This document shows, in pieces, positions 1 through 12,559 of a stretch of DNA of 64,000 bases. Position 1 is the stretch's first letter. Every line of letters starts with the position of its first letter. The stretch lies in the NCBI GenBank assembly GCA_964199315.1, contig OZ116703.1:26908001-26972000 (forward strand), read 5' to 3'. Both the position numbers and the translations under genes were made by a program. This DNA is from Orbicella franksi (taxonomy: Eukaryota). The notes beneath the pieces are model-generated. The model was given only the letters and a program-made list of their open reading frames with translations, was not told the origin of the DNA and searched no databases.

Positions 1-26
1 TATTTTCCATTTCTGATATATAATTC

Positions 27-518
27 CAGTCGAACCTCCGGTTGCGACCACCTCTCGTAAGCGAGCAACTCTCCTCAGCGACCAGTTTTCCAAAATACTA
101 AAGTTTCCAAATCAAATCGCTATATTTGGAACCTCTTGTAAGTGACTACCTCTCGTTAGCGACCGCGACCACTTTTAGAGCTATAAGTTTAAAATTTTCT
201 TTTGTTTTTAACCTCCAATAAGCGACCACTTGACAGATAATAGAGAGGAAATTAGATAAGAAGGTGGTGTAACATTATCCGTATTCCTGGGTATTACAAA
301 AGACGGAAATATTTCAGTGGGAAACCGTATTTGGTCTCGAAATTGACTTTTTACATGAATAAAAATGTTTAAAACGTGGGGTAAGTCTCTGAAGTTACAA
401 TATGCTAATGTGGCAAAATTTTGATCCACTATGGTCCAAGCTCCCGTAAGCGACCACCTCCGGTAAGTGACCATCTCGACTTGACATTTTGAGTGGTCGC
501 TTACCGGAAGTTTGACTG
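27..518. mobile_element. Tc1/mariner-type MITE (non-autonomous), in an intron of the CNBD gene
   Basis: TIRs CAGTCGAACCTCCGGTTGCGACCAC / GTGGTCGCTTACCGGAAGTTTGACTG, TA on the right flank, internal repeats of GCGACCAC(C)T. Confidence 0.75.
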
Positions 519-568
519 TAGAGTTTTTTGACGCCTGGTGATAATGTTTTCTTCATTTATGTTATTAG

Positions 569-3500
569 GAGCATCGACTTCTTGAAGGAATGGCCTGTAG
601 AGTTAATGGCCAATAATCCCAAAAAATGTCTTTTCCATTTTTTCAGGTAGGAAAAGTGCTTTGTGTCATATACAGATTAGACGACTTGCATCTTTAAACA
701 AATGCAATAATGCAAGCGTGACAAGCCTTTTCTAATAACATAACGACAAATTATTTTGCCTTCACAAACTTGATGGACGGCAGACTCAACTGCTTCATTT
801 CCAACCAACTTTTAAATTTTTAATCAGCGCATGTTTTTCCTAACACGTGATTTGGAAATGTTTTTTTTTCCTAGAAGCGGATCTGTTCTTGTAAGAGACA
901 GCAATCATTCAGACTGGATTTACATCATAAAATCGGTATTTACATTTCCCTTTTCTGTAACTGTCCTGTGTATATATAGTCTCCCATAGTCTCTAAACTT
1001 AATTCCAGTTCTCTAGTTTTCTTTATTTCTACAATAATTTGTTCTATGAAACCCGTTTTCGATTTTTCTTTCTTCAGGGGAGTTGCCAAGTCCTTAAAAA
1101 GCTGAGAGAAGTGAGATGCTGCCTTACTCAACATAACGACAGGGTTGTAGGATTTGAAAACGGTACTTTGTCCAAAGTTCTTGTGTATTGTTCAATAGAA
1201 TAATTAATTTAATGTCTCACCGATATCAGTTTATTTATTTCAAAACACAATACACTTAAAAAAACGTATCGGGGTAATCGAAAACACACCTTAACTCTCG
1301 TTCACGTGCCATAAAAATTGTGAGGAAGATTTTTATTGAAAAAATTATTTCTGTCTGTTTATAGTAAAAAGCCAGGTTCCCAAAGCCTCATCACGTGACA
1401 GACTGGAGCGAGTGAAGGCAAAGTTGTCAGTTGTGACGCTTTTATTACCCAAGCTGCACCTCAGGCATGGTCTGATAACACATGAAAGCGACAATGACGA
1501 TGATGCTGGAACCGAGGCAAAAACCGCTGACGCCATCGACGAAGTAGCCGCTGCCCAGAAAATATTTAAAACAAGTATTGATAACAGCAGCCAAGGTTCC
1601 CCCGAAGAAAAGTCGATCAAGTCGGTCGGTTTTCGGGCGGCTACACCGCCGCACGGAAGGCGAAAGGGAGTGGTAAGCGCCCCGGAACCATCAACGAGGA
1701 TTCCTACTGACGAACAGTCAAACAATCTAAAACACAGGTTGGACTCAAGGAGAAAGCTTTCGAGTGAACCTGGTCTGATCAGCATAACTCGTGAAGAGAA
1801 CGCGGCTGAAGAGGAGCAGTTAAGAAAATTTTCAAGCTCTGAACTTCCTCGGCGATTAAAAAAAAGAATGACGGGCAATAGCAACTTGGCTTTACCTACT
1901 GTGGAAGAGGAAACCAAGTCTTCATCACCGGTAATAAATAATTCAGAACTTCCAGTGCACCTATGAAATTTTGAGAGATAAAATTTTGCAACATCCTTCC
2001 CCGGCCTTCTCGGGCATTTAAATCTGATTAAGCGATTAGCTGAACATTAGAGAAGCCTGGACACGAGGCTAAGGTCTAACAAAAGTCCTGGGCACGGCGC
2101 TACAGGGTCGTGGCAGAAAAACGTTTCGTAGGAATTTCGGATTCAAATCGAGAGACGTGTTGTTGATCAGTTCATCACAGAAACCTCATGTCTAGATTTC
2201 ATGTTTTAACTTAAAAGTTCTATCTTTAGTTCCAAGCTAGCAGGTAATATGGCAGCTTTCATGTAATTCTGATTGTGTTTTAGACCTTAACTCCACCGCG
2301 TCAACGATTCAGCTCTTTGAATGCAGATTCTGTAGAACACGACCAGAGGACTAGTAGGTCCAATTCAAACACTCGGCCCAGGAGCCAGTCTCCCGCTTCG
2401 AGGCGCACAAGCAGAGTGAGAAAATCTACTGTGACTCCCCCTGCAGGTAGTAAACAGAAATTGTTACTGTCGTTCTGTGAAATAATGACATAGCAACCAA
2501 AAGAAACCTTGAATTATCAAACGGTTGTAGTTATATCTGTGTGCATTCTCTAGGAGATGGCAGTGATGACCTTTTTAGTATTGTCGCAAGTAAGGGGGCA
2601 TTAGACTTAAATGATAAAAAAAAAATGAACGTTACTCCAGCGGAAAGAGATTCAGGAGTAGGTTTTTAGCGCGTTCCGCTAACGAGTCTATGTTGCGTAT
2701 TCAAGACAGAAGACTTTATAAATGATCTAAATTTCATGGCAGAAAATCACGTGTATTTTTGTTTTTTAGAGGACTTATCTGAAGAGGAAAAGAATCTACC
2801 ACTACACAAGATTTCTGTTATTGACGAGGGCGAACAAAGGCCGGTTAGTACGCGACATCCTTCATGCTTCCAAGATTACAAACTACTAAGCTTTGAAAAG
2901 TCAACAACTCGACTAATTGCTGGATGTTTTGTATGCATCTTTCGCCTGGGAAACTTTGAGGATAGGGTGTAAATAATTAATATAATTTCCCCAACTATGC
3001 CGTGTTCTTGTATGGAGAGCTAGCCTCCCACGCAGACGCTCTTTGGGCTCGTCACGTACGTCACGTTCGTGGGGAAGGAAGATTGCCTGATGATCGATGG
3101 GAGCCCAGAAAAACGTCTGCGGAGGAGGCTAATGTAGAGCAGGAAGGATAATACATTTATCTGGTGATGTTAAGCTGTAAGCTACCCCCGGGTTGCGACC
3201 ACCTCTCGTAAGAGTGCTGTAATTGTAACCGAATTGAAATGTTTTTTGTTTATTGTTTTCGTACAGACCGAAGTTCGCATCACAGACGCTGATTTACATC
3301 CCATGTTCGTGCAAGTTGCCCTTCTTCAAAAAGGAGACAGTTTTGTAAGAACCCAACATGATGTTTCTCTTTCAGTGATCAGTGACATCTCTCATGCGTT
3401 CCATGTGACATTCCGTGCATTACATACATGAATTCGACTACGTGCTCACGTTCCCCGATCTTTAATTTTTGTTACGTTCCATTTTTAGAACAAGAAAAGT

Positions 3501-6500
3501 TGATTAGTTCATAGCTAATTACTGTAAACCCTGAACAGGTCAGAGCCACCTTTTTAGGATACTGTGGACGTCATATATACGCAAGGTGTCTTGATAGGAA
3601 AATAAGATACCCTGTCTACTAAAATAAGGTATCTTTGTTCAGCTGTGTATTATCTTACTGTCTAATTGCTCTTCACGTTTCATTCAGGGAGTGTCCTCTA
3701 TGGTATTCGACGAACAGCCCAGTCTCAGCCTGGTTAGTATTGCGCATGTCAGTTATTATGGACTTACATACATCAGATTTACCCCTCCGTCGTCAAAAAA
3801 GAAAGAAAAAATATCCAGTTCCAAAAGATTATTCGGGCTGGTCGGCCCAAAAAAACTGTTCCGTAGATCAAAACTCTGCAGAGGTGACATGCAAGGGGTT
3901 TTAAATTGGTCTTGGAAAGAACAGTAGCAAAGAACAGACTAGTGGACATTGTTGAAGAACTTGGCATATCAAAGTTCCAAAGAACTGAGCACGTAAATTC
4001 ATTCACGGTTGGCTAGGTTAATACAGTCGCGGGCATTTAACCGAACATAACACTGCTTACTCGGTTCCCGTTATTTTCTCTCCACAGGTTAGTAATGGAG
4101 CAGAGTGTATCATGATTTCGAAGAAGTTTTTTCTGACTCATTGCTCCGACGCAATGAAAAGGCGGCTTCTTGTCACGGTAAGAATAAGTCAGAGAGGATA
4201 CTTACATCGCTCTACATCATGACGAGTCTTTGCGCAAACGAAATAATAACGATATGATACCAAGTGATGTTTCATATCGCCCAAAGGGCGTTCTTGTAAA
4301 CCGTTGGAATCGACTTCTTTTCGAAGGCTATGAAATTTCTAGAGAGCGGGGTTGTACAGCTTTCGTGAATTGGGTGACAATAGTTTGTACACTCACATCT
4401 CCTAACTTCTTTGTGAGGAATTATGGGACGGACCACTTTGAGCTCGAAGTGGAGGGTAGGGGTGTTGGGCAAATACCAAGAGGAAATGTTCTGTAAAGCA
4501 GACAGCGAAAAGAAGCAAAAAAAAGTCGCCCGTATAATACGAATAAAGGAACAAGTGTGGAAAACAAGGATTTTGTCTTGTAGTGTACTAAGAAATTTAT
4601 AGAAATGGCCTGACTCTTTTATCGTCGCTCTCGCCCGTAGCGCGCGAGCAACCGGCGAGAGCGGCGATGCCGCGAGGAGCTTGGTGGTTTTTTTCATTCC
4701 CCCCACCAGGCCACTCGCGGCTTCAAAGATCGCCTATAGCAATGTACGTATCACTGAAAGCGGGTGTACCAAAAAAAAAACTAAATTTATTATATGGCTA
4801 GCTCCGTGAGCAGCTCCTCCCTCTCTCCTCCATAGAGGCCTCTTTCGTGCGGCTTTGACCGTAGGCTGGCAGCTTTGAAGCTGGGGGAGGGAAAAACGGA
4901 AGCGCGCAGGGAAAGCCGTCCCTCGCGCGCCTTCCCATTCTCAATATTCAATTTCCCTTAGGGAGCCTCTGCGGAGGAGAGAGGATTCCTCCTCAAAATA
5001 ATTCGCACTCTCGATGAATTCTTTCTCTGGATGAGAAACCAAAATATATAAGAGAGTTTTGGCTTGTTGGGACTGCCGTAGTGGAGACCGTAACCGCAAC
5101 GTATTTTCAAATGGTAAAACTAACAAATCTGACGTATATAGACTACAAGTAGTCCCTCTTTCGCTTAGTCCGTCGTGCGTGACGCGAAAGAAAACCACGA
5201 GAAAAAAATGACCGAACGAAATCCTGGAGGCCTTCAGGATTTGGCGCGGCCATTTTTTTCTCGCGGTTTTCTTTCGCGTCACGCACGACGGACTAAGCGA
5301 AAGAGGGACTACTCGTAGTCTAGATGTATAAGACCTTCTTAACAAAGCCTCGCGTTCGCCTCTCAGTTATGTACTATTCTTCCGCACCCATACATGGAGT
5401 GCAATCATGCGGGAATGTGCTAAATCCAAAAACCCGGTTGAAATACTTTTGGTCACGAATTCAAAACGCTGCGTGATTTTGTCTTTCGTTAAGGATTTTT
5501 TGAATACTAGTTTTGACGAGTCAGCTAAATCGTTTGCCCAAACTTTACATCAGTCACATGCAGCTGTCCTTATATAGTAAAAATCTGACTAAAATCTTGT
5601 GGGATTCAAGACATGACTAACTGGTCAAAATGGCAATTCTAGTTAATTCTAGCTTATACTCTTCACCGACCAAAATAACAGGGGAAAAAAAATTCAAATT
5701 TTTCAGTGCTAAGTTCATGTAGTTGATCAAATGCGCCTCGACCAGTTACAATGGCTGTGGTGACACCAAGGCTGGACAAGAGATAACTTTAGTGAGCTAT
5801 TTCGATAGTGTGGCCTCTTCGATCTATTAACTTTGGTGACACGAGAAGCTGTTCGCCTTGTTATCCACGCTAGTAGAGACGGAGTTTGTTAGACCCCAAG
5901 AGTTTCTGGGATCTGTTAGAGCAAAAAAGATCCATCGGGACGTTACAAAATACACAGTTGCCTGGCTCCAGCAGTAGAGTTTAATCCAGTAACATAACCA
6001 GAAGCAGTCAGACCAAGAATTCTACAGTTCCATTTGAGAGCGAGTCAGTGACGCGATACAAATTATGTTTGCATCAAAAAGACGCCATTTCTAAACCATT
6101 AACACTCTCAGAGTGCTATTGGTCACTGGTAAAACTAAAAGTGTTTCGGAAACATTAATTACTTTCAAAATCTCGCAGGTAGACAAGTTACGGCTTGGTG
6201 CAAGTTACACTTACAGTCAAATAGTTTATTACAGTTATGATCCTATGGCTAATAAACAACATTGGCGCGACTCAAAACCGCAGCACTAAATTCTACGTGA
6301 ATATTTTTGAGAACAAAAGGGCATAAACTAAATAAAACTAAATAACCGATTTTCTCTCCTCACACTCTAGTTCAAGTAAGGAAATTCATACTTCGATAGT
6401 TTCGATGATCGACAAAACGATACAACAAATGAACTATAGTAAAATTTTATACCCAAGCTGGATACTTGGGTTTACAAATGAAAAAGCTCATGGCACTTTA

Positions 6501-9500
6501 CAAAGAAATGTGTTAAACTACACAATCAGTTATAAAATTTACATGCAAAAAAAAAAAGGTTTAAAAACTAAGTACATTTAAAAAATATTCACGATGCCTA
6601 CAAACACAGTGAGTAGCTGTCCACAAATAGTTCAAAGAGGTATGTTTTAAGTCCTTTTTTGAAGCTCTCATAAAGTTTGACTTGCGTATGGCAAGTGGCA
6701 GTTTGTTCCTAATCTTGGGGCACATATACTAAATGCCCTATCATCATAGGTCTTTGTGAAAGACTTCGGCTGATCTATCTAACCGTGTTGTTAGCGTCGT
6801 CGTTCTACAAAATTGTGGCCATCCAGTTAATGATGTACGTATATGCACATGTCTCATACACAAACATTTTAACGAATATCTTTTACAGGGGTAATTTCTT
6901 CTTAGCGCGAACGGCCTCTGGTTTATCATCGGCATTCTTCGTTTCAAAGCAAATGAAAATACCTTCCTTCACTTTGGCATCGAACTTTTGATAGCTCAAA
7001 CCTTGTCGCTGCTCATTCTGCATTTTTCCGCATATAACAACGGTTTTGATTCCTTGCATCTGGAGGAGTGGAGTACATTCATCGCACGGTGTCTTTGTTA
7101 CAAACAACGTTCCGTCCGCAAAGTCCTTGGTGTTGCGCAACAGCAAGGCGTTTTGTTCAGCGTGGATCGAATACGGATACTTCTTATCTTTAACACTTGC
7201 ATCGTGACGAGAAGCCCTTGCAAACTCACCGTACAGCGCCTTCGTCGGGAATCCATTCCAACCGATAGCTACGATTTCATGGTCTTTGTTAATGACCACC
7301 GCACCCACTCCTGCAGTAGGCTCGTCTGTCCGCTCGGCTAAGAATTTTGCAAAGGTTATGAAGAAAGAGGCCTGTGAATGATCAAGCTCGTTTTTCGCTG
7401 GGTCGAACGAGGTCGTTCCATTCTGGTTTAGGGCCTCAAATTTGTATCCTTTTTCTGAGCCTACAAAAACGTGAGCCATCCATTTAAAGAGGCCGTTAAA
7501 ATCACTCTCGACCTGCTTTTTCATAATTTCGTCGAAAGCTAGCCATGGAAGGTCGTCTTTGGCGCGTGCCATCCAGTTTTCCTCCCAGTAGGTTTTAAAT
7601 AGCTCTCTCTGTAGCTCCTCTAAAGCCGCTATGGGTGTCTTGGTTTTCTTCTTTTTCTCGCTAGCTTCCACGACTTCCTCTTCCACTCTGGGAACAAACG
7701 TGGTTTCACCGATTGCGCTAACTTTAAAAAGATTATCGACACACGACTTTTCGGCTTCAAATTTCTCTTTATCTAGACCTATGTATCCAGGTTCAATTGG
7801 CAGGTAGAAGACTCTCTTGACTTTAGATTGCACCAGAAGCTTTGTGCAGAAAGAACACGGCTTTCGTGAGACGAACACTTTACAACCTTGAGCCATATTG
7901 TGGTGCTTCATCAACAGACGGGTTACACCATGGACGTCGTCGCGTGAACATTCTGCAGCATAAAGGATATCATCAGGTAATACAAGCAAGGCTCCAACTT
8001 TCTTGAAAGGATCAGACTGCGGATCTGGGGTTGCTGTAATCTTGGAAGGATCAGGCTGCGCATCTGATGTCGCTGCAACCTTGGAAGGATCAGGCTGGGC
8101 ATCTGATGTCGCTTCAACCTTGGAAGGATCAGGTTTCGCATCTGATGTCGCTGCAATCTTGGAAGGATCGGGCCGCGCAACTTGGGTTGCTGGAAACCGT
8201 TCCATCCAGAGAGCTAAAGCCATAAACAGGTTCTCTTTAGATATTCTGGATTCCCGATCTGCATACGAAGGAGACTCTTTGGGAGTGGAAGCGTGTGCGC
8301 GCTTCCGTCCTCCTCGCGTCCCCATTGTGGCTGAAGCATCTGAAGGATCTGAAGAGTTCGTGGAGCTATTGTGAATGTTAGAAATGCCTTTATTCGGAGC
8401 TTCTGGCGTTTGATTCATTCTCGAGTTGTCAAAAACTCCGCTACTCGTAAAAACGCGTCCAAAGTGGCTGGGATTCTAGAGTTCTGAGAAACGTTTTTCA
8501 CGTGATTTATTGTTCTCGATGTGCCAATCAGAGACGTCGACGTGGACAAATTAGACAAAGGGACGCAGCACAGACTCTTCAACAGAGAGCTTTTTGTCTC
8601 CGTTCGAAAGACAAAAGAACTGAGATGTCAATGATTGTAGCCAGATATATACGGTATCATGGCTGAAAATTTGATCTCAGAAAAACTTCAGCGACAGCCA
8701 ACAGTAACTGCCGACAACGTCATATTTAATCGTCCCCCCTCACCTGCTCCATCCGAATACAAGTGCAGTAAATCTCAAACATAAAAATTTTAAGTCCATG
8801 GGCAACATTATGAAGCGGAGAAAGTTAAATGAACCTCAATCTTTCATATACCGTCATTTGGGTCGTCACGCAACACTTCTCACCAATAGCACGGGGGGTG
8901 GGGCAACGATGCGTGGTGATCCAACAAACAGCTGCGAGGGAGACCACCTAGAGCTTATTCTGTTTTTTTTTTTTTTTGTTTTTTTTTTACCGCACAGAGA
9001 TTTGGGATGTCCATTGGACGACTATATATTGGATAATTTGTGTTTGATATCCTGTTCTGAGAGACCGAGACTCTTACTCCGCGGTTCCCTTGTACGCACC
9101 TTGGGCAATTTTCAGACGCGACATCCTGTCCAAAAGCAGCTAAAAGTAAACTTGAACATTTTTGAAATGCAAAATACCTTCCAGTAGTAAGCCCTACTCG
9201 CGACAATACGCCCCCCCCCCCGGGAATTTTCAACCCCCCAACGAAGGTTCAAAGCACATACTTAACACAGTTACGAATATATTATTTTTTCTACAAGGCC
9301 AAATAAATACTGTATATACCAATTCCATTTTCCGATCGACGTTTGAACGATCGTTAATAAATTCATATTCCTTTTGTTTTATCCTTAAACCTGCTTACGA
9401 CGTGTCGTCTTGCTAAAATCACTGACAACAGATTTTAACATTTTCTGTCCTGTTTTACAGGAAACGCCTTATCCTAACGACGAGTCACTGCAGAAAAGCC

Positions 9501-9688
9501 TACAGGACAAAGTCAACTGGGATGCATACCGCCGTAAAACTCTAAAAACGCTGGTCCGCGAACTACCGACGAAACAAAGAAGAGTGAAAGATCTTTTGGT
9601 GCACAAAAGAACTAAACGCGACATGTCTTTAGGTGAGGACTTGAAAGAAGCCATTAGAAAGATCCAAAGGAAAGATGATGAAACCTGA
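569..9688 (+). CDS. Cyclic-nucleotide-binding-domain protein (CNBD2-like), 5'-partial; gene begins before the window
   Basis: Phase-consistent exons 569-646, 875-935, 1078-1162, 1365-1930, 2284-2446, 2554-2589, 2770-2843, 3267-3344, 3688-3732, 4088-4177, 9461-9688. Translation: SIDFLKEWP..KCLFHFFRSGSVLVRDSNHSDWIYIIKSGSCQVLKKL ... FVQVALLQKGDSFGVSSM..LSLVSNGAECIMISKKFFL..ETPYPNDESLQKSLQDKVNWDAY. Confidence 0.85.
3021..3131. mobile_element. Short MITE
   Basis: TIRs TAGCCTCCCACGCAGACG / CGTCTGCGGAGGAGGCTA. Confidence 0.65.
4821..4983. mobile_element. Short MITE
   Basis: TIRs CTCTCTCCTCCATAGAGGC / GCCTCTGCGGAGGAGAGAG. Confidence 0.6.
5139..5322. mobile_element. Foldback (near-perfect palindromic) MITE
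   Basis: About 75-bp inverted arms TAGACTACAAGTAGTCCCTCTTTCGCTTAGTCCG... / ...CGGACTAAGCGAAAGAGGGACTACTCGTAGTCTA. Confidence 0.75.
6440..6785 (-). mobile_element. 3' fragment of an L2/CR1-clade LINE, degraded
   Basis: Frameshifted minus-strand translation ~QPKSFTKTYDDRAFSICAPRL..KLPLAIRKS..ESFKKGLKTYLFELF matches the typical L2 ORF2 C-terminus; followed by TGTAAAGTGCCATGAG, resembling the L2 3' tail. Confidence 0.7.
6883..8418 (-). CDS. CDADC1: Cytidine and dCMP deaminase domain-containing protein 1-like (two deaminase folds), intronless, 511 aa
   Basis: RISKENLFMALALWMERFP resembles the CDADC1 N-terminus. N-domain H(GVT)..SRKPCSFC lacks the catalytic Glu; C-domain has TAGVGAV..GWNGFP..IHAEQNALL..FVTKTPCDEC. 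Uninterrupted ORF. Confidence 0.9.
   Translation of the reverse strand: MNQTPEAPNKGISNIHNSSTNSSDPSDASATMGTRGGRKRAHASTPKESPSYADRESRISKENLFMALALWMERFPATQVARPDPSKIAATSDAKPDPSKVEATSDAQPDPSKVAATSDAQPDPSKITATPDPQSDPFKKVGALLVLPDDILYAAECSRDDVHGVTRLLMKHHNMAQGCKVFVSRKPCSFCTKLLVQSKVKRVFYLPIEPGYIGLDKEKFEAEKSCVDNLFKVSAIGETTFVPRVEEEVVEASEKKKKTKTPIAALEELQRELFKTYWEENWMARAKDDLPWLAFDEIMKKQVESDFNGLFKWMAHVFVGSEKGYKFEALNQNGTTSFDPAKNELDHSQASFFITFAKFLAERTDEPTAGVGAVVINKDHEIVAIGWNGFPTKALYGEFARASRHDASVKDKKYPYSIHAEQNALLLRNTKDFADGTLFVTKTPCDECTPLLQMQGIKTVVICGKMQNEQRQGLSYQKFDAKVKEGIFICFETKNADDKPEAVRAKKKLPL
8002..8172 (-). repeat. 39-bp coding minisatellite (13-aa PDPSK(I/V)AATSDAQ unit, ~4.5 copies) inside CDADC1-like ORF
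   Basis: CTTG(G/A)AAGGATC recurs at 8002, 8041, 8080, 8119 and 8158. Confidence 0.9.
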
Positions 9689-9831
9689 TACAGTGATGGC
9701 AACGAGGTTATAAAAAATGTAATTAGAAGAATTTCGAGAAACAAAGACCTCAAGAAGATCAATTTTCTTTCATAACTTTTAATAACGAGCTTATTTAAAT
9801 AAAATAAGTAAATAAATAAAATATAAATATC

Positions 9832-9961
9832 TTAATTGAACACTCCCCCAATGGGGCTTTTCACCTAGGCTAATGAAACCAAATGATGAAACAAATAATG
9901 CAAATTAACATAAGAGGGTTAAAAATCCCAACCGGCAGGAGGCAGACCAGTTGGCTATTTA
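9832..9961 (-). mobile_element. 3' fragment of a tRNA-derived SINE
   Basis: Reverse complement GTAAATAGCCAACTGGTCTGCCTCCTGCCGGTTGGGATTTTTAAC resembles the 3' part of the SINE at 35068-35240. Confidence 0.55.
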
Positions 9962-12559
9962 CTATTTACAATTTTTTATTTTCAAATTGTATCAAAATTT
10001 GTGGTGCATGATTTTGAAAATATTTTATTTGTAAACATATTTATAAATAAAATTGTACCTTTTGACCATGTGTGTGACTATTAATAGAACAAATCTTTTC
10101 AGTCTTGTGTTATGACTCGTTACGATGTGAAGATAACCACATATATTTTTGGCATTTTGGACACAGCATGTGCTCGCAGCTTCAAAGCCTTGCCAAAACC
10201 CCTGAGCCAATTTTCCAATGAAGGCTAACCACTAACTTAGAACAGTTGTTTTGCTTGGCTGTGATAGCCTAAGAGACACTTGGTACTCTTTAGCGGCATG
10301 TCAGACTAGTTGCCGAACCATGGTATGTATTTTGGTGAGGCTAATCATGCCTGATTTGTCGCCGTATTGGCTAATTAAGAATTTTGATAGGATGAAATGT
10401 AAAATCGGCACCGACACCGGCACAAACCTGTTTACAGGCGTTTCATACTACTCTGCCTTGCCTGCCCTGAGGCACTGTAAAGAAAAGGAGCGAATGGTGG
10501 CGAACGAACTAAAATGGAGAAATGAAAAGTAAATTAAACTGATCCTGTCTTATTTTTTTGTCGCTTACACTTCACTCCGTGTTAGGCCGGCTTGTGAACT
10601 TGCCACGGGGAAAGCATCTAGTATGGCGCTCCATATTAGCTTCGCTCTACGAACGGTTTTAAATGTGTAATCGCCTCTCTGAAGCACTGAAATCACCGTT
10701 GATTTCCACGCGCAACCCCAGCGCGAGAAAAGCTGTGGCAAAAATTGCACCAAAACTCGTCTGTGTAAATGAGCCTTAAACAACTGAATTCTGTCTATTT
10801 TCAGTTCAGTTGCTTCAATGCACGAATCCATTTGTAGCTTCGTAAAGCTTTTTCTTTTGTACTTTGCTTAAAAGAGTTTTTTCTTATAATACTAACCAAC
10901 GGTGTTTAGCAATACTCCAGTGAACAATTCGTAGAAAACATTTGGAGATGGAACCGAGACAAAACGTACTAGTTACTTCCTCTTAGCTATGATTTCTGTC
11001 GAGAGAGTTGCTGTAGTAACTAATTTTGAATTGTTTAAAAAATTATTTATTTCTTCAGCGATTAGACTGAATCCTGCTAAACGTTTGGTACGTGATGTAA
11101 GCCGTATCTTGCGCTCGCGCGCGGACGTCACCCAGTACTTCGAGTATTCCACGCTGATGGACAGCGAAATGCAAAAGACCAAATCTTACACTTTGACTGT
11201 TAAATCGGTCTTCCACCTCGAGCGTGCAGTTAATTAACAGATGATTTCCTGAATCGGAGTGTGATCTCATGCAAACTATAAATAAATTTTGGAATGTTTA
11301 GCTGAGAAATTTTAATAATTTATCCTTCTAAGAGACAATCGGAGCCAGTTTTCCTGCGAAAGAAAAGCTGTATTGACGCTTTTTGCAGTTTATTTTTTCG
11401 GGCGCTGTGAGTTAAAACCAACATTGATTTAGTCTCAATTTAACAAATAGACTGGGTAAATAATAGCGAACTTGGCCGCGTTGAACTTGATTATTTAATG
11501 AAAACCTACAAGCCTGAAACACGACAAACGAAAATATTGCTTTGACAGAATATCAAGTTTTCATTCGTCAAGAAAAATAGATGCCCTTCCCCTGGGTAAA
11601 CGAGGAGGAATTTGAAAGCATTTTATCTGCCTCCTTCTTCAGAAACGCGCCACCGGACTAGCGCACATCTTGGATTTAAAAATATTGTAATGCTGGGTCA
11701 GATTAATGCGGATTAAAAATATGGAGCGGCAACGTTTTGCGCGGGAAATGTACGTCAGCGTGAAAAATGCACAATATAAACTTCTACAAATTTTATTTTG
11801 ATATTAACTTCAAGGCTAAATTTAGCTATTTTTCATTTTTTACAATATATACATTTTACAAACCGAGGACGCAGCTTTCATTCGAAACGTCATTTATATA
11901 AAGCTTTGCTCCTCGTAAATAGCTAAAATGATTTAATAAGGAAAAAGCGAAAACGTGATTTACAGGCTGTAATTATCTCTGATTGCTTTCTGGAAAATTC
12001 ATGAAGGTTACGTAATATAGATGTGTGTTCTTTTCAGTTTTCTCTCTTAGTAGTAACTTGAGAGTAAGTAAACTTGACTTTCAGTCAGAAGTCTTCTTTA
12101 TATCTTCTGCAAGGTCAAGGCAAAATTACTAACAGGCTTCAAGGAAACCACGCTCGGCCAAAATTCTTGAAATGTTCGCTGTGTAAGCGAATTATAGAGT
12201 TCCTTTCACGGCGTTTTGTAATTGCCTGTCCGTATTGCACTTTTCCAACCACAGCAGTCAGCTGACGGAATGGCGACGAATCAAGGCATGTCATTGAAAC
12301 TGAGATGAATACATCATCGTGACTGCCAACGGGGATTCTATCTTCTGTCTCTTGCGGTATTTATTTACAAGATACCCTACAATATTTCACACCATAAGAA
12401 AATATCTTTCTCCAGCGGGAAAAGCCATAAAGTTACAGCGGGCACGAAGAAAATATTACCAACTTGTTTGTACACTATCCACAGGAGTTCGCTTCCTGCG
12501 CAACTCAAAGAACAGTTATGTAAAAAAGCTATGAAAGTCCTCTCTTTCTACGTTGGTAT

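Follow-up and report, generated by a model that had tools for sequence, protein, structure and literature searches.

An expressed single-exon CDADC1-family deaminase gene in old antisense nesting within a coral host-gene intron

The nested locus

The window analyzed here, a 64,000-nucleotide stretch of the Orbicella franksi genome (contig OZ116703.1), contains a forward-strand host gene whose last intron holds a complete second gene on the opposite strand (Table 1). The host exon at 4088-4177 is flanked by ag and gtaaga, ttttacag directly precedes 9461, and the two exons read in phase as far as a TGA at 9686-9688. The preliminary description had predicted this in-phase splice from the sequence, and poly(A) RNA bears it out: a 554-nt contig of run X1 (depth 83) connects 4176 to 9460 across a GT..AG joint (4177|9461 in window numbering), skipping 5,283 nt. 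The cNMP-binding label of the host gene comes from an Oculina gene model; Pfam scans of the open frames in positions 1-4177 of the window gave no match, and a six-frame genome search with PF00027 gave none at the host locus. The nested open reading frame (ORF), which starts with ATG and occupies one exon of 511 codons plus stop, is as intact, intronless and antisense as had been claimed.

A second X1 contig (record 6; 3,282 nt, depth 409) aligns along 5702-8951 with no gap and a single differing letter. The gap-free contig, together with depths of only 0-80 in the adjoining intron bins, indicates that an unspliced transcript covers the ORF at five times the depth of the host exons; the RNA contigs carry no strand information, and it is the ORF that suggests a minus-strand transcript. 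Fourteen RNA runs from several studies contain the stretch, but since runs were picked for containing the gene, their depths cannot be ranked. Two raw-read poly(A) runs with the same species label, sampled at ~12%, yielded zero reads on the deaminase gene or the host exons, so expression is not universal.

The CCAAT and E-box-like motifs reported upstream of the ORF are both present (ATTGG at 8524-8528, CACGTG at 8499-8504). ATTGG lies inside a 61-nt block, 8508-8568, that is conserved in Oculina patagonica with a local score of 62 (maximum of 27 in 200 shuffles); the E-box lies outside it and is unconserved. The remainder of the host intron gave no blastn alignment with Oculina.

Table 1. Features of the nested locus (window coordinates).
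Feature	Position	Strand	Evidence
Host gene penultimate coding exon	4088..4177	+	Splice signals; RNA contig joins it to 9461; protein 93% identical to Oculina exon
Host intron enclosing complete deaminase gene, 5,283 nt	4178..9460	+	GT..AG joint 4176/9460 (cut +1), X1, depth 83
Host gene terminal coding exon, 75 codons + TGA	9461..9688	+	Sequence; RNA contig over 9460-9790; protein 91% identical to Oculina
Minimal transcribed unit of nested gene (RNA contig ends, not true ends)	5702..8951	- (inferred from ORF)	Gap-free X1 poly(A)-RNA contig
CDADC1-family deaminase CDS (511 aa + stop), single-exon	6883..8418	-	ORF list; PDB 9hfq E 3.7e-31; AF2 model
Candidate promoter element conserved upstream of the ORF (-150 to -90 relative to ATG), including GTCCACGTC and CTGATTGGCACA	8508..8568	-	77% identity to Oculina L011 9866-9926
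N-terminal family motif SKENLFMALALWMERFPA, residues 60-77, N-domain helix 1	8188..8241	-	Conserved from chytrids to vertebrates (alignment A1)
Coding 39-bp minisatellite, 4.6 units (PDPSKVAATSDAQ repeats), disordered loop between N-domain helix 1 and strand 1	8001..8179	-	TRF
N-terminal pseudo-deaminase domain, residues 138-215; HGV replaces HxE, PCSFC retained	7774..8007	-	Human CDADC1 N-domain match E 1.9e-09
Helical linker, residues 216-345	7384..7773	-	AF2 helices; part of full-chain superposition on 9hfs_A
C-terminal catalytic dCMP-deaminase-type domain, residues 346-495; HAE 7156-7164, PCDEC 7075-7089	6934..7383	-	PF00383 E 2.5e-22
T368, at human CDADC1 K337 position	7315-7317	-	Substrate-contact column table

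Protein architecture and fold

Judged by its sequence and its predicted structure, the ORF protein is a full-length CDADC1 homologue, with the pseudo-active N-domain and HAE/PCxxC C-domain that had been read from its letters. Human CDADC1 (PDB 9hfq) aligns with it (E 3.7e-31) over three collinear segments, namely the N-terminal motif, the N-domain and the C-domain, and Pfam dCMP_cyt_deam_1 (PF00383) matches residues 349-462 (E 2.5e-22). The AF2 model (mean pLDDT 82.7) has human CDADC1 chain 9hfs_A as its best Foldseek match (E 1.3e-27, TMt 0.83); the best PDB matches are three human CDADC1 cryo-EM chains, spanning both domains and the linker, and the DCTD structural match covers one domain only.

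The N-domain would bind zinc yet be catalytically dead, and a long helical linker connects it to a C-domain with a complete HAE/PCxxC zinc site. W71, M72 and E73 of the N-terminal motif are nearly invariant, the model helix at residues 61-72 reaching a pLDDT of 98, as are H163, S184, R185, P187, C188 and C191 of the N-domain; the motif and the N-domain signature are common to vertebrate, hemichordate, annelid and chytrid proteins. Five linker helices (217-233, 247-256, 263-277, 280-289 and 297-318) have pLDDT >90, and H419, E421, P444, C445 and C448 of the C-domain are invariant in 52 sequences. The minisatellite (TRF period 39, 4.6 copies, 86% matches; repeat family D1) encodes a loop with pLDDT <50 at residues 103-133, and its units number 0 to 3 in close relatives, with none in Oculina.

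Conserved nesting and purifying selection

In Oculina patagonica the orthologue, also single-exon, lies between the counterparts of these host exons (L011 12631-12542 and 7784-7548), in an intron of ~4.76 kb. The nesting is older than the divergence from the Oculina lineage, which makes this an old nested pair and not a fresh insertion. No host exons lie within 10 kb of the coral copies at L012, L013, L014 and L017. Between the two orthologues dN/dS is 0.38 (bootstrap 0.29-0.54; 416 codons) at a dS of 0.47, which establishes that the deaminase gene is under selection and, as the preliminary description had it, still coding. The ratio is 0.23 in the N-domain and below 1 in every domain; for the last two host exons it is 0.04, and the deaminase's non-synonymous rate is ~seven times theirs.

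It could be supposed that the frame is neutral or decaying, intact by chance, and that its RNA signal comes from host pre-mRNA or genomic DNA: the contigs lack strand, DNA may occur in RNA libraries, and two raw-read runs have no signal. Against this stand an upper bootstrap bound of 0.54 on dN/dS, the retention of the invariant catalytic and zinc residues, intact orthologues in at least seven relatives, the conserved block upstream, and an RNA depth exceeding that of both the adjacent intron and the host exons. The selection and depth data refute the notion, provided that the RNA has the strand of the ORF, and we attach next to no probability to it; the ORF is not silent. The nested gene is real, expressed and, as a gene, ordinary.

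Family range

The CDADC1 family, published in 2025 as vertebrate-specific and cited in the preliminary description as having been described mainly of vertebrates, has members in chytrid fungi, cnidarians (corals and anemones), an annelid, hemichordates and vertebrates. The named relatives in hemichordates, annelid and chytrids contradict the vertebrate-specific label; a literature search found no paper discussing non-vertebrate CDADC1. In the tree, the named cnidarian proteins and the four genes of this genome form one clade (SH-aLRT 98) that stands beside hemichordates, annelid and vertebrates; the chytrid proteins serve as the outgroup. The family is old, and its descent looks vertical in these sequences.

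Origin of the intronless state

Of the paralogues in this genome, four are intact and single-exon, each from a different deep clade, and one is broken. Membership of an expanded coral family, proposed earlier, is upheld; other corals too have multiple copies, and the coral family is undergoing gene birth and death. The other coral copies and that of Actinostola are single ORFs, every anthozoan copy examined being intronless. The Owenia orthologue has 7 exons and that of Tetraodon at least 5; annelid and fish have two introns in the same alignment columns and with the same phases, one corresponding to D365 of the window protein (phase 1) and the other to R428 (phase 2).

The gene had been interpreted as retroposed or mobilized. 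A recent insertion of this kind into the present intron, whether from the processed transcript of a multi-exon parent gene or aboard a transposon, would suit an intronless gene among intron-rich neighbors in a genome whose canonical DCTD is multi-exon, and transposon genes (a Pao retrotransposon, rve) do lie near the coral copies at L012, L013 and L017. However, Oculina has the gene in the identical nested position at a dS of about 0.5, this genome yielded no multi-exon CDADC1 parent, no poly(A) tract follows the 3' UTR, no flanking direct or inverted repeats or target-site duplication were found around the gene, and all anthozoan paralogues are intronless, in clades predating the coral-anemone split. 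Recent insertion is largely refuted and very improbable, and the single-exon state is most likely the older one at this locus.

Retroposition survives as an ancient, family-wide event. Because annelid and fish share two intron positions and phases that the anthozoan copies examined lack, the absent introns are best explained by a retroposition on the anthozoan stem; the founding gene of the Anthozoa was probably a retrocopy of processed mRNA that would then have multiplied by DNA duplication, with birth and death. Alternatively, the shared introns may have been gained on the bilaterian stem.

The open frame, splice, RNA, fold, conserved nesting, purifying selection, family range and intron pattern, all shown here, converge on a functional, expressed, single-exon CDADC1-family gene in old antisense nesting, its anthozoan family probably descending from an ancient intronless founder, a reading to which we assign a probability of about three in four.

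Substrate

Human CDADC1 is a (d)CTP deaminase, converting (d)CTP to (d)UTP (PMC12088426, PMC12184417), and by homology the coral protein most likely acts on a free cytosine nucleotide, which it would, like the human enzyme, hydrolytically deaminate to the uracil nucleotide. That (d)CTP is its main substrate is an even bet. In the human enzyme K337 and K450 contact the alpha- and gamma-phosphates and I396 discriminates against the 2'-OH (PMC12088426). The equivalents of K392, K423, N367, H398, E400 and Y457 are conserved in the window protein. In all eight members of its clade the K337 position is occupied by T, K450 by E, K452 by R and I396 by S, so that two of five triphosphate-clamping lysines are replaced; vertebrates and chytrids have K or R at the K337 position, as do 95 of 110 other coral proteins of the core clade. 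These changes make strict (d)CTP specificity uncertain, and, with a C-domain scoring 68.7 bits against human DCTD and 53.9 bits against the human CDADC1 C-domain, open the possibility of a preference for dCMP, dCDP or CTP. A shifted enzyme, working mainly on dCMP/dCDP or ribo-CTP because of its altered triphosphate clamp and 2'-discriminating residue, nevertheless seems rather unlikely, since K392, K423 and R452 are retained, as are the Y457 and L455 pocket residues, the genome already encodes a highly conserved DCTD for dCMP, and the K450/K452 segment can be aligned only poorly.

A possible role in defense

A narrower version of the preferred reading, and not a competitor to it, would see in the coral CDADC1-like genes an innate-immunity family that has expanded, evolves fast, is expressed conditionally and, by analogy with bacterial anti-phage dCTP deaminases, might block viral or transposon DNA synthesis through dCTP depletion or a rise in dUTP. 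Lineage-specific expansion speaks for it (Montipora foliosa has six distinct clusters, L012 contains a tandem pair, and most of the 355 matches are from corals), as do the broken copy here, the non-synonymous rate, the variation of substrate-contact residues between clades, the difference between depth 409 in one RNA run and zero reads in two others, and C-domain matches to the PADLOC dCTPase and NCBIfam anti-phage dCTP deaminase models (E about 3e-16). Yet the single intact gene that this genome has in each of four old clades is not a large expansion, dN/dS stays below 1 throughout, selected RNA runs do not permit ranking by depth, and the bacterial model is matched at 59.7 bits, below its cut-off of 400, which is domain-level similarity only. 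Expansion, protein evolution faster than that of the host gene and a pseudogene copy fit innate defense but are not diagnostic of it, and we regard the role as doubtful.

Relation to known systems

The bacterial anti-phage dCTP deaminase (PADLOC dCTPase, NCBIfam NF041025) has the same zinc-dependent, dCMP-deaminase-type catalytic domain, and dCTP to dUTP is the reaction that would be common to both; it differs in its N-terminal module, the deaminase core alone matching. Human DCTD (2W4L) resembles the coral C-domain, a dCMP_cyt_deam_1 domain with KYPY...HAE and GWNG motifs, in sequence and fold (E 1e-08), but is a single-domain protein of ~180 aa; beyond this domain the window protein has the pseudo-domain, linker and N-terminal motif, and its residue at the K423 position is K, that of DCTD L. 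The coral's own DCTD (G000:C9:7.53 Mb) is multi-exon and ~80% identical to human DCTD over 75 aligned residues.

Vertebrate CDADC1 (human NYD-SP15; PDB 9HFQ-9HFT; PMC12088426, PMC12184417) has the same order of parts as the coral protein: the LFxxLxLWMExFP helix, an N-domain with PCxxC and without the catalytic Glu, a linker of >100 residues and an active-type HAE/PCDEC C-domain. The two match structurally over the full chain, and both coexist with canonical DCTD. The coral protein is, however, only ~23% identical, is encoded in a single exon and not several, has no counterpart of the insertion that follows GVGAVIW in vertebrates, contains a tandemly repeated 13-aa unit in an N-domain loop and has several paralogues per genome. 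The NCBI proteins named CDADC1-like or CDADC1 (Nematostella, Montipora, Stylophora, Acropora, Paramuricea, Saccoglossus, Ptychodera) belong to the same family and have the same architecture, the cnidarian ones forming one clade with the window gene. Their names are purely automatic annotation; the window gene differs in falling within a separate clade of 8 members (marked by T368) and in being nested in a host intron.

Like animal nested intronic genes, the coral gene lies wholly within a host intron on the opposite strand, and like animal processed retrogenes it is an intronless copy with intron-conserving orthologues elsewhere. It differs from the latter in having no poly(A) tail, target-site duplication or surviving parent; the retroposition, if it happened, is older than the divergence of corals and anemones and gave rise to the entire anthozoan family.

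A CDADC1-like deaminase inside an intron

The protein encoded on the opposite strand within the last coding intron of the host gene is a CDADC1-like deaminase, as the preliminary description had proposed. Its best match among PDB sequences is human CDADC1 (9hfq, E 3.7e-31), through three collinear stretches (residues 40-79, 139-220 and 348-480); Pfam places dCMP_cyt_deam_1 at residues 349-462 (E 2.5e-22) and detects a further, weak stretch of deaminase type at 168-212. An AlphaFold2 model based on a 52-sequence alignment has a mean pLDDT of 82.7, with disorder confined to residues 1-42 and the repeat loop. The best Foldseek matches to this model are the three human CDADC1 cryo-EM chains, 9hfs_A among them; they cover the linker as well as the two domains (E 1.3e-27, TM 0.83, target-normalised); the structural match to DCTD covers one domain only. 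The pairing of a pseudo-active N-domain with an HAE/PCxxC C-domain, also proposed beforehand, stands: the N-domain is of the inactive type, with H163-G-V where an active enzyme has HxE and human CDADC1 has HAG, and it keeps its PCSFC motif, and the zinc/catalytic motifs of the C-domain are invariant in 52 aligned sequences. The N-terminal family motif R[IL]SK.[ND]L[FY]..L.LWME.FP is present as RISKENLFMALALWMERFPA, the counterpart of LFTLLSLWMELFP in vertebrate CDADC1, and is common to all other two-domain relatives, including those of hemichordates and chytrids. The window protein has every architectural feature of CDADC1 that could be tested. A reading as a polynucleotide-editing, AID/APOBEC-like enzyme was rejected: the corresponding Pfam matches lie far below cut-off, and in fold and sequence alike the protein is of dCMP-deaminase type. 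The gene adds a new and somewhat divergent member to a known enzyme family, and its nested arrangement is an ordinary one.

Features of the nested locus and of the encoded protein (nucleotide positions in the window; residue numbers in the window protein)
Feature	Position	Strand	Description
Host exon	4088-4177	plus	acceptor ctccacag before, donor gtaaga after
Palindrome	5136-5325		95+95 nt, 92% complementary, no spacer
RNA contig (run X1)	5702-8951		3,282 nt, depth 409
CDADC1-like ORF	6883-8418	minus	511 codons, ATG start
Coding minisatellite	8001-8179		39-bp repeat, 4.6 units of PDPSKVAATSDAQ, in a disordered N-domain loop after helix 1
Codon of residue 49	8272-8274		Ser
Upstream block	8508-8568		61 nt, 90-150 nt upstream of the ATG
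A-rich run	8955-8990	minus	just upstream of the RNA contig end
Terminal host exon	9461-9685	plus	preceded by ttttacag; in phase with 4088-4177 to TGA 9686-9688
N-terminal family motif	residues 58-77		RISKENLFMALALWMERFPA
N-domain	residues 138-215		deaminase-like; collinear match to 9hfq, AlphaFold2 model
PCSFC	residues 187-191		N-domain
Linker	residues 216-345		more than 100 residues joining both domains; AlphaFold2 model
C-domain	residues 346-495		CMP/dCMP-deaminase-like; match to 9hfq, AlphaFold2 model
HAE	residues 419-421		C-domain
PCDEC	residues 444-448		C-domain

Transcripts of host and nested gene

The arrangement itself, an ORF lying between host exons that are joined to each other, is confirmed by comparison of four RNA runs with positions 3950-9900 (5,951 letters). 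A 554-nt contig of depth 83 in the poly(A) run X1 connects 4176 with 9460 across GT..AG borders; it skips 5,283 nt and shows the host exons spliced together across the nested gene. The ORF is represented by the separate X1 contig listed in the table, which is collinear with the DNA and gap-free, with one differing letter; neighbouring intron bins have depths of 0-80 in the same run. These contigs carry neither strand nor true transcript ends; the ORF and the host occupy the minus and the plus strand, respectively. The contig joint, the deeper gap-free contig and the shallow intron bins thus establish that the host splice is real and that the ORF lies within its own unspliced, more abundant transcript. 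Two raw-read runs bearing the same species label (X23 and X24) have zero reads on the nested gene or the host exons at ~12% sampling, and at least one quarter of the sampled words of the stretch are present in 14 RNA runs from several studies. Low-level read-through that the assembler joined on may account for the extension of the ORF contig to 8951. Depth falls from 409 to ~15 across the A-rich run, so that the end of the contig may be an assembly break rather than a transcription start. Nesting of this kind is an ordinary feature of animal genomes.

Other features of the locus can be noted here. The palindrome in the same intron is the sole place with raw RNA reads from X23 and X24; its contig word depth is 26,705 in X1 and 8,003 in the RNA run X5, with numerous distinct loose ends and opposite-strand joints, and it looks like a very high-copy transcribed hairpin repeat of a MITE/SINE-like kind. 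Residue 49 is Ala in the database protein P0001 (JGI), a difference that is probably allelic within the same species. Neither Pfam on the open frames of 1-4177 nor a genome-wide PF00027 search yielded a cNMP-binding domain at the host locus.

CDADC1 outside the vertebrates

Two 2025 papers in PNAS (PMC12184417, PMC12088426) treat CDADC1 as vertebrate-specific, as having "evolved in vertebrates", and leave open what it is for; the preliminary description likewise placed the family mainly in vertebrates, a placement that does not survive a scan of 1.84 billion cluster representatives, which yields 76 proteins at E <1e-30 and 539 at E <1e-10. Members sharing the N-terminal motif and the two-domain layout are found in corals (Montipora, Stylophora, Acropora, Oculina and the octocoral Paramuricea), sea anemones (Nematostella, with two genes, and Actinostola), hemichordates (Saccoglossus, Ptychodera), an annelid (Owenia), hagfish and jawed vertebrates, and chytrid fungi (Batrachochytrium salamandrivorans, Polychytrium aggregatum). 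The non-vertebrate members keep the CDADC1 architecture, including the N-terminal motif, and most of the triphosphate-binding lysines. The presence of the full architecture in corals, anemones, hemichordates, an annelid and chytrids contradicts a vertebrate origin, and CDADC1 is re-dated to at least the opisthokont ancestor. Within the library searched, a literature search on CDADC1 in invertebrates, corals and chytrids found no paper on non-vertebrate members, and Iyer et al. 2011 makes no mention of CDADC1; the names CDADC1 and CDADC1-like outside the vertebrates come from automatic annotation only. As the family had already been flagged in this way, the surprise is moderate.

The nearest neighbours in the ESM Atlas are one cnidarian cluster and two chordate CDADC1 clusters. 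A quick IQ-TREE phylogeny (LG+C20) rooted on the chytrids resolves a cnidarian clade (SH-aLRT 98) that holds all four Orbicella genes, with hemichordate, annelid and vertebrate groups beside it. The tree, built from two-domain proteins without DCTD, agrees with vertical descent accompanied by many losses; the case for a single origin of the architecture is the N-domain and N-terminal motif that these proteins have in common. Two sauropsid "CDADC1-like" proteins, P0227 (Crocodylus) and P0241 (Sarcoramphus), form a long-branched sister group of vertebrate CDADC1. Each has two PCxxC motifs and, in a scan limited to HAE and the close variants H[AGSCV]E, no such motif in either domain; they may be fully inactive relatives of CDADC1.

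Residues that contact the substrate

In human CDADC1 the triphosphate is bound by K337, K392, K423, K450 and K452, a five-lysine clamp that is conserved from sharks to humans; I455 and Y457 form the narrow base pocket, and I396 discriminates against the 2'-OH (PMC12088426). In a C-domain alignment of 159 two-domain proteins, K392, K423, N367, H398, E400 and Y457 are conserved almost everywhere, and position 337 is K or R in vertebrates, in chytrids and in 95 of the 110 other core-clade coral proteins. The eight sequences in the clade of the window gene all carry T at 337, S at 396 and, in a 450/452 segment that aligns poorly, E at 450 and R at 452: their clamp is incomplete (T, K, K, E, R; three of five cationic). 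The C-domain of the window protein scores 68.7 bits against human DCTD and 53.9 bits against the C-domain of human CDADC1. Overall, the CDADC1 family seems to consist of nucleoside-triphosphate deaminases, while the clade of the window gene may have a relaxed or shifted substrate preference. The genome also has its own DCTD, on another contig (C9), which is highly conserved and multi-exon (E 1.5e-38 to human DCTD), so that the role of dCMP deaminase is filled without the CDADC1-like genes, as it is in vertebrates. At G000:C9:7533327-7533593 (L009), this DCTD is ~80% identical to its human counterpart over 75 residues, and an exon of it ends directly behind KYPY; its multi-exon structure sets it apart from the CDADC1-like genes.

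Selection and the age of the nesting

Compared over 416 codons with its orthologue in Oculina patagonica (P0007, 422 aa), the window gene has dN 0.179, dS 0.467 and dN/dS 0.38 (bootstrap 0.29-0.54), with 0.23 in the N-domain and 0.42 in the C-domain; the last two exons of the host gene have dN/dS 0.04 at similar dS. The window gene is constrained and its replacement sites evolve at ~7 times the host rate. These values bear out the earlier view of the gene as intact and still coding, and the RNA contig at depth 409 shows that it is expressed. The minisatellite has 0, 1, 2 or 3 units in close relatives and none in Oculina.

At L011, the single-exon Oculina orthologue (10001-11269) is flanked by exons on the other strand that match those of the host, with 93% and 91% protein identity to the host exon and the terminal host exon of the window, respectively; it is inside an 853-aa gene model with a cNMP_binding hit. 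Because this orthologue is nested between equivalent exons, the nesting predates the split of the window and Oculina lineages (dS ~0.5). A recent date for the retroposition or mobilisation that the preliminary description had favoured is thereby refuted at this locus, the more so as all paralogues examined are intronless and the window gene has neither a parent nor the marks of a retrogene. Only the coding parts align when the window and the Oculina intron are compared by blastn. A local alignment finds the upstream block to be 77% identical to the corresponding Oculina position, with a score of 62 against a shuffle maximum of 27, and the block is a candidate promoter element. Of the CCAAT and E-box-like motifs previously remarked upstream of the gene, the first is present as ATTGG within this block; the second, CACGTG, is outside it and is not conserved. 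No host-gene exons occur within 10 kb of four other coral copies (L012, L013, L014 and L017), a result that bears on these copies alone: they are not nested as the window gene is.

An intronless family in Anthozoa

Paralogues and their intron status, singled out in the preliminary description as the points to check, were sought in six frames across the whole 497-Mb genome. There are four intact genes: the window gene on C6 (511 aa), one on C13 (436 aa) and two on C2, at 9.58 Mb (406 aa) and 20.2 Mb (566 aa). Each is a single-exon gene from a deep clade of its own. A broken copy on C2 at 26.3 Mb (G000:C2:26305664-26309079; L004, L005 and L008) carries a TAG in frame, frame changes and, within its N-domain, a 2.2-kb insertion, and it retains K at the position of K337. 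The C13 paralogue, which retains K337, is present in 13 RNA runs, so that more than one family member is probably expressed. The other anthozoan copies for which DNA was obtained (Oculina, the L012 tandem pair, L013, L014, L017 and Actinostola) are all single ORFs. These copies document a lack of introns throughout the anthozoan family.

The two CDADC1-like ORFs at L012 (859-2184 and 10001-11206) are ~9 kb apart, with the same succession of small ORFs after each, and constitute a tandem segmental duplication; an rve integrase gene lies near them. Four protein models, P0006 (Paramuricea clavata, 872 aa), P0140, P0150 and P0159, have four PCxxC motifs, or two CDADC1-like units per model, and represent either genuine tandem fusions or neighbouring intronless genes that gene prediction has run together.

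The orthologous gene of Owenia has 7 exons and that of Tetraodon at least 5. They share two intron positions, identical in phase and in alignment column, which correspond to window residues D365 (phase 1) and R428 (phase 2), in a comparison that used only the four 3' introns of the Tetraodon model, whose 5' part is poor (a 980-nt first "exon"). At least two introns thus date to the protostome-deuterostome ancestor. The coral ORF is uninterrupted at both places, and the anthozoan family is without both introns. These introns could alternatively have been gained on the bilaterian stem. The most economical reading would be a single ancient retroposition in the anthozoan stem, because introns shared among bilaterians are missing from a group whose genes, reportedly on the evidence of the Nematostella genome paper, generally retain ancestral introns. 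DNA-level duplication would have followed, the L012 pair being an example. There is no A-run downstream of the stop codon or at the contig end near 5702; a repeat search around the gene found no target-site duplications, flanking direct repeats or terminal repeats; and the genome-wide six-frame search found no multi-exon parent, only single-frame paralogues, the one broken copy and the unrelated DCTD. Absence of such marks is expected for so old an event, and the inference of retroposition is left unproven.

Function, significance and known systems

The notion that the coral CDADC1-like genes serve innate defence through the nucleotide pool is a hypothesis, and an unlikely one. It accords with the expansions in Acroporidae (six M. 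foliosa clusters on one record length), the birth and death of copies, a protein rate faster than that of the host gene, the variability of substrate-contact residues, uneven expression, and a match at the level of the domain to models of bacterial anti-phage dCTP deaminase. Set against it are a single intact gene per old clade in the Orbicella genome and dN/dS <1 in every domain; moreover, the bacterial model NF041025 is matched at 59.7 bits versus a whole-protein cut-off of 400, the best stretch being residues 414-461, and the PADLOC dCTPase match (E 3e-16) covers the same deaminase core. The more elaborate proposal, of an ancient retrogene-derived, inducible defence that depletes dCTP or loads dUTP against viruses or retroelements, and within it a nested clade with a new substrate preference (fixed K337T, K450E and I396S), is more doubtful still; if true, it would supply the long-sought physiological rationale for CDADC1 from outside the vertebrates. 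In mammals the gene is expressed in the testis.

The value of the gene is comparative: it lies in the re-dating of CDADC1, in an intronless family in Anthozoa and in natural variants of the triphosphate clamp. The question moves from why vertebrates invented CDADC1 to why a few lineages kept it and corals multiplied it. With several paralogues per genome and a clade without two of the clamp lysines, corals provide natural variants through which substrate specificity could be explored. Their copies also make a clean case, a whole family that is intronless in an intron-rich genome and has bilaterian orthologues with shared introns. Measured against processed retrogenes, the window gene differs in having no poly(A) tract, flanking target-site duplications or multi-exon parent, and resembles them in being free of introns that its orthologues hold at conserved positions.
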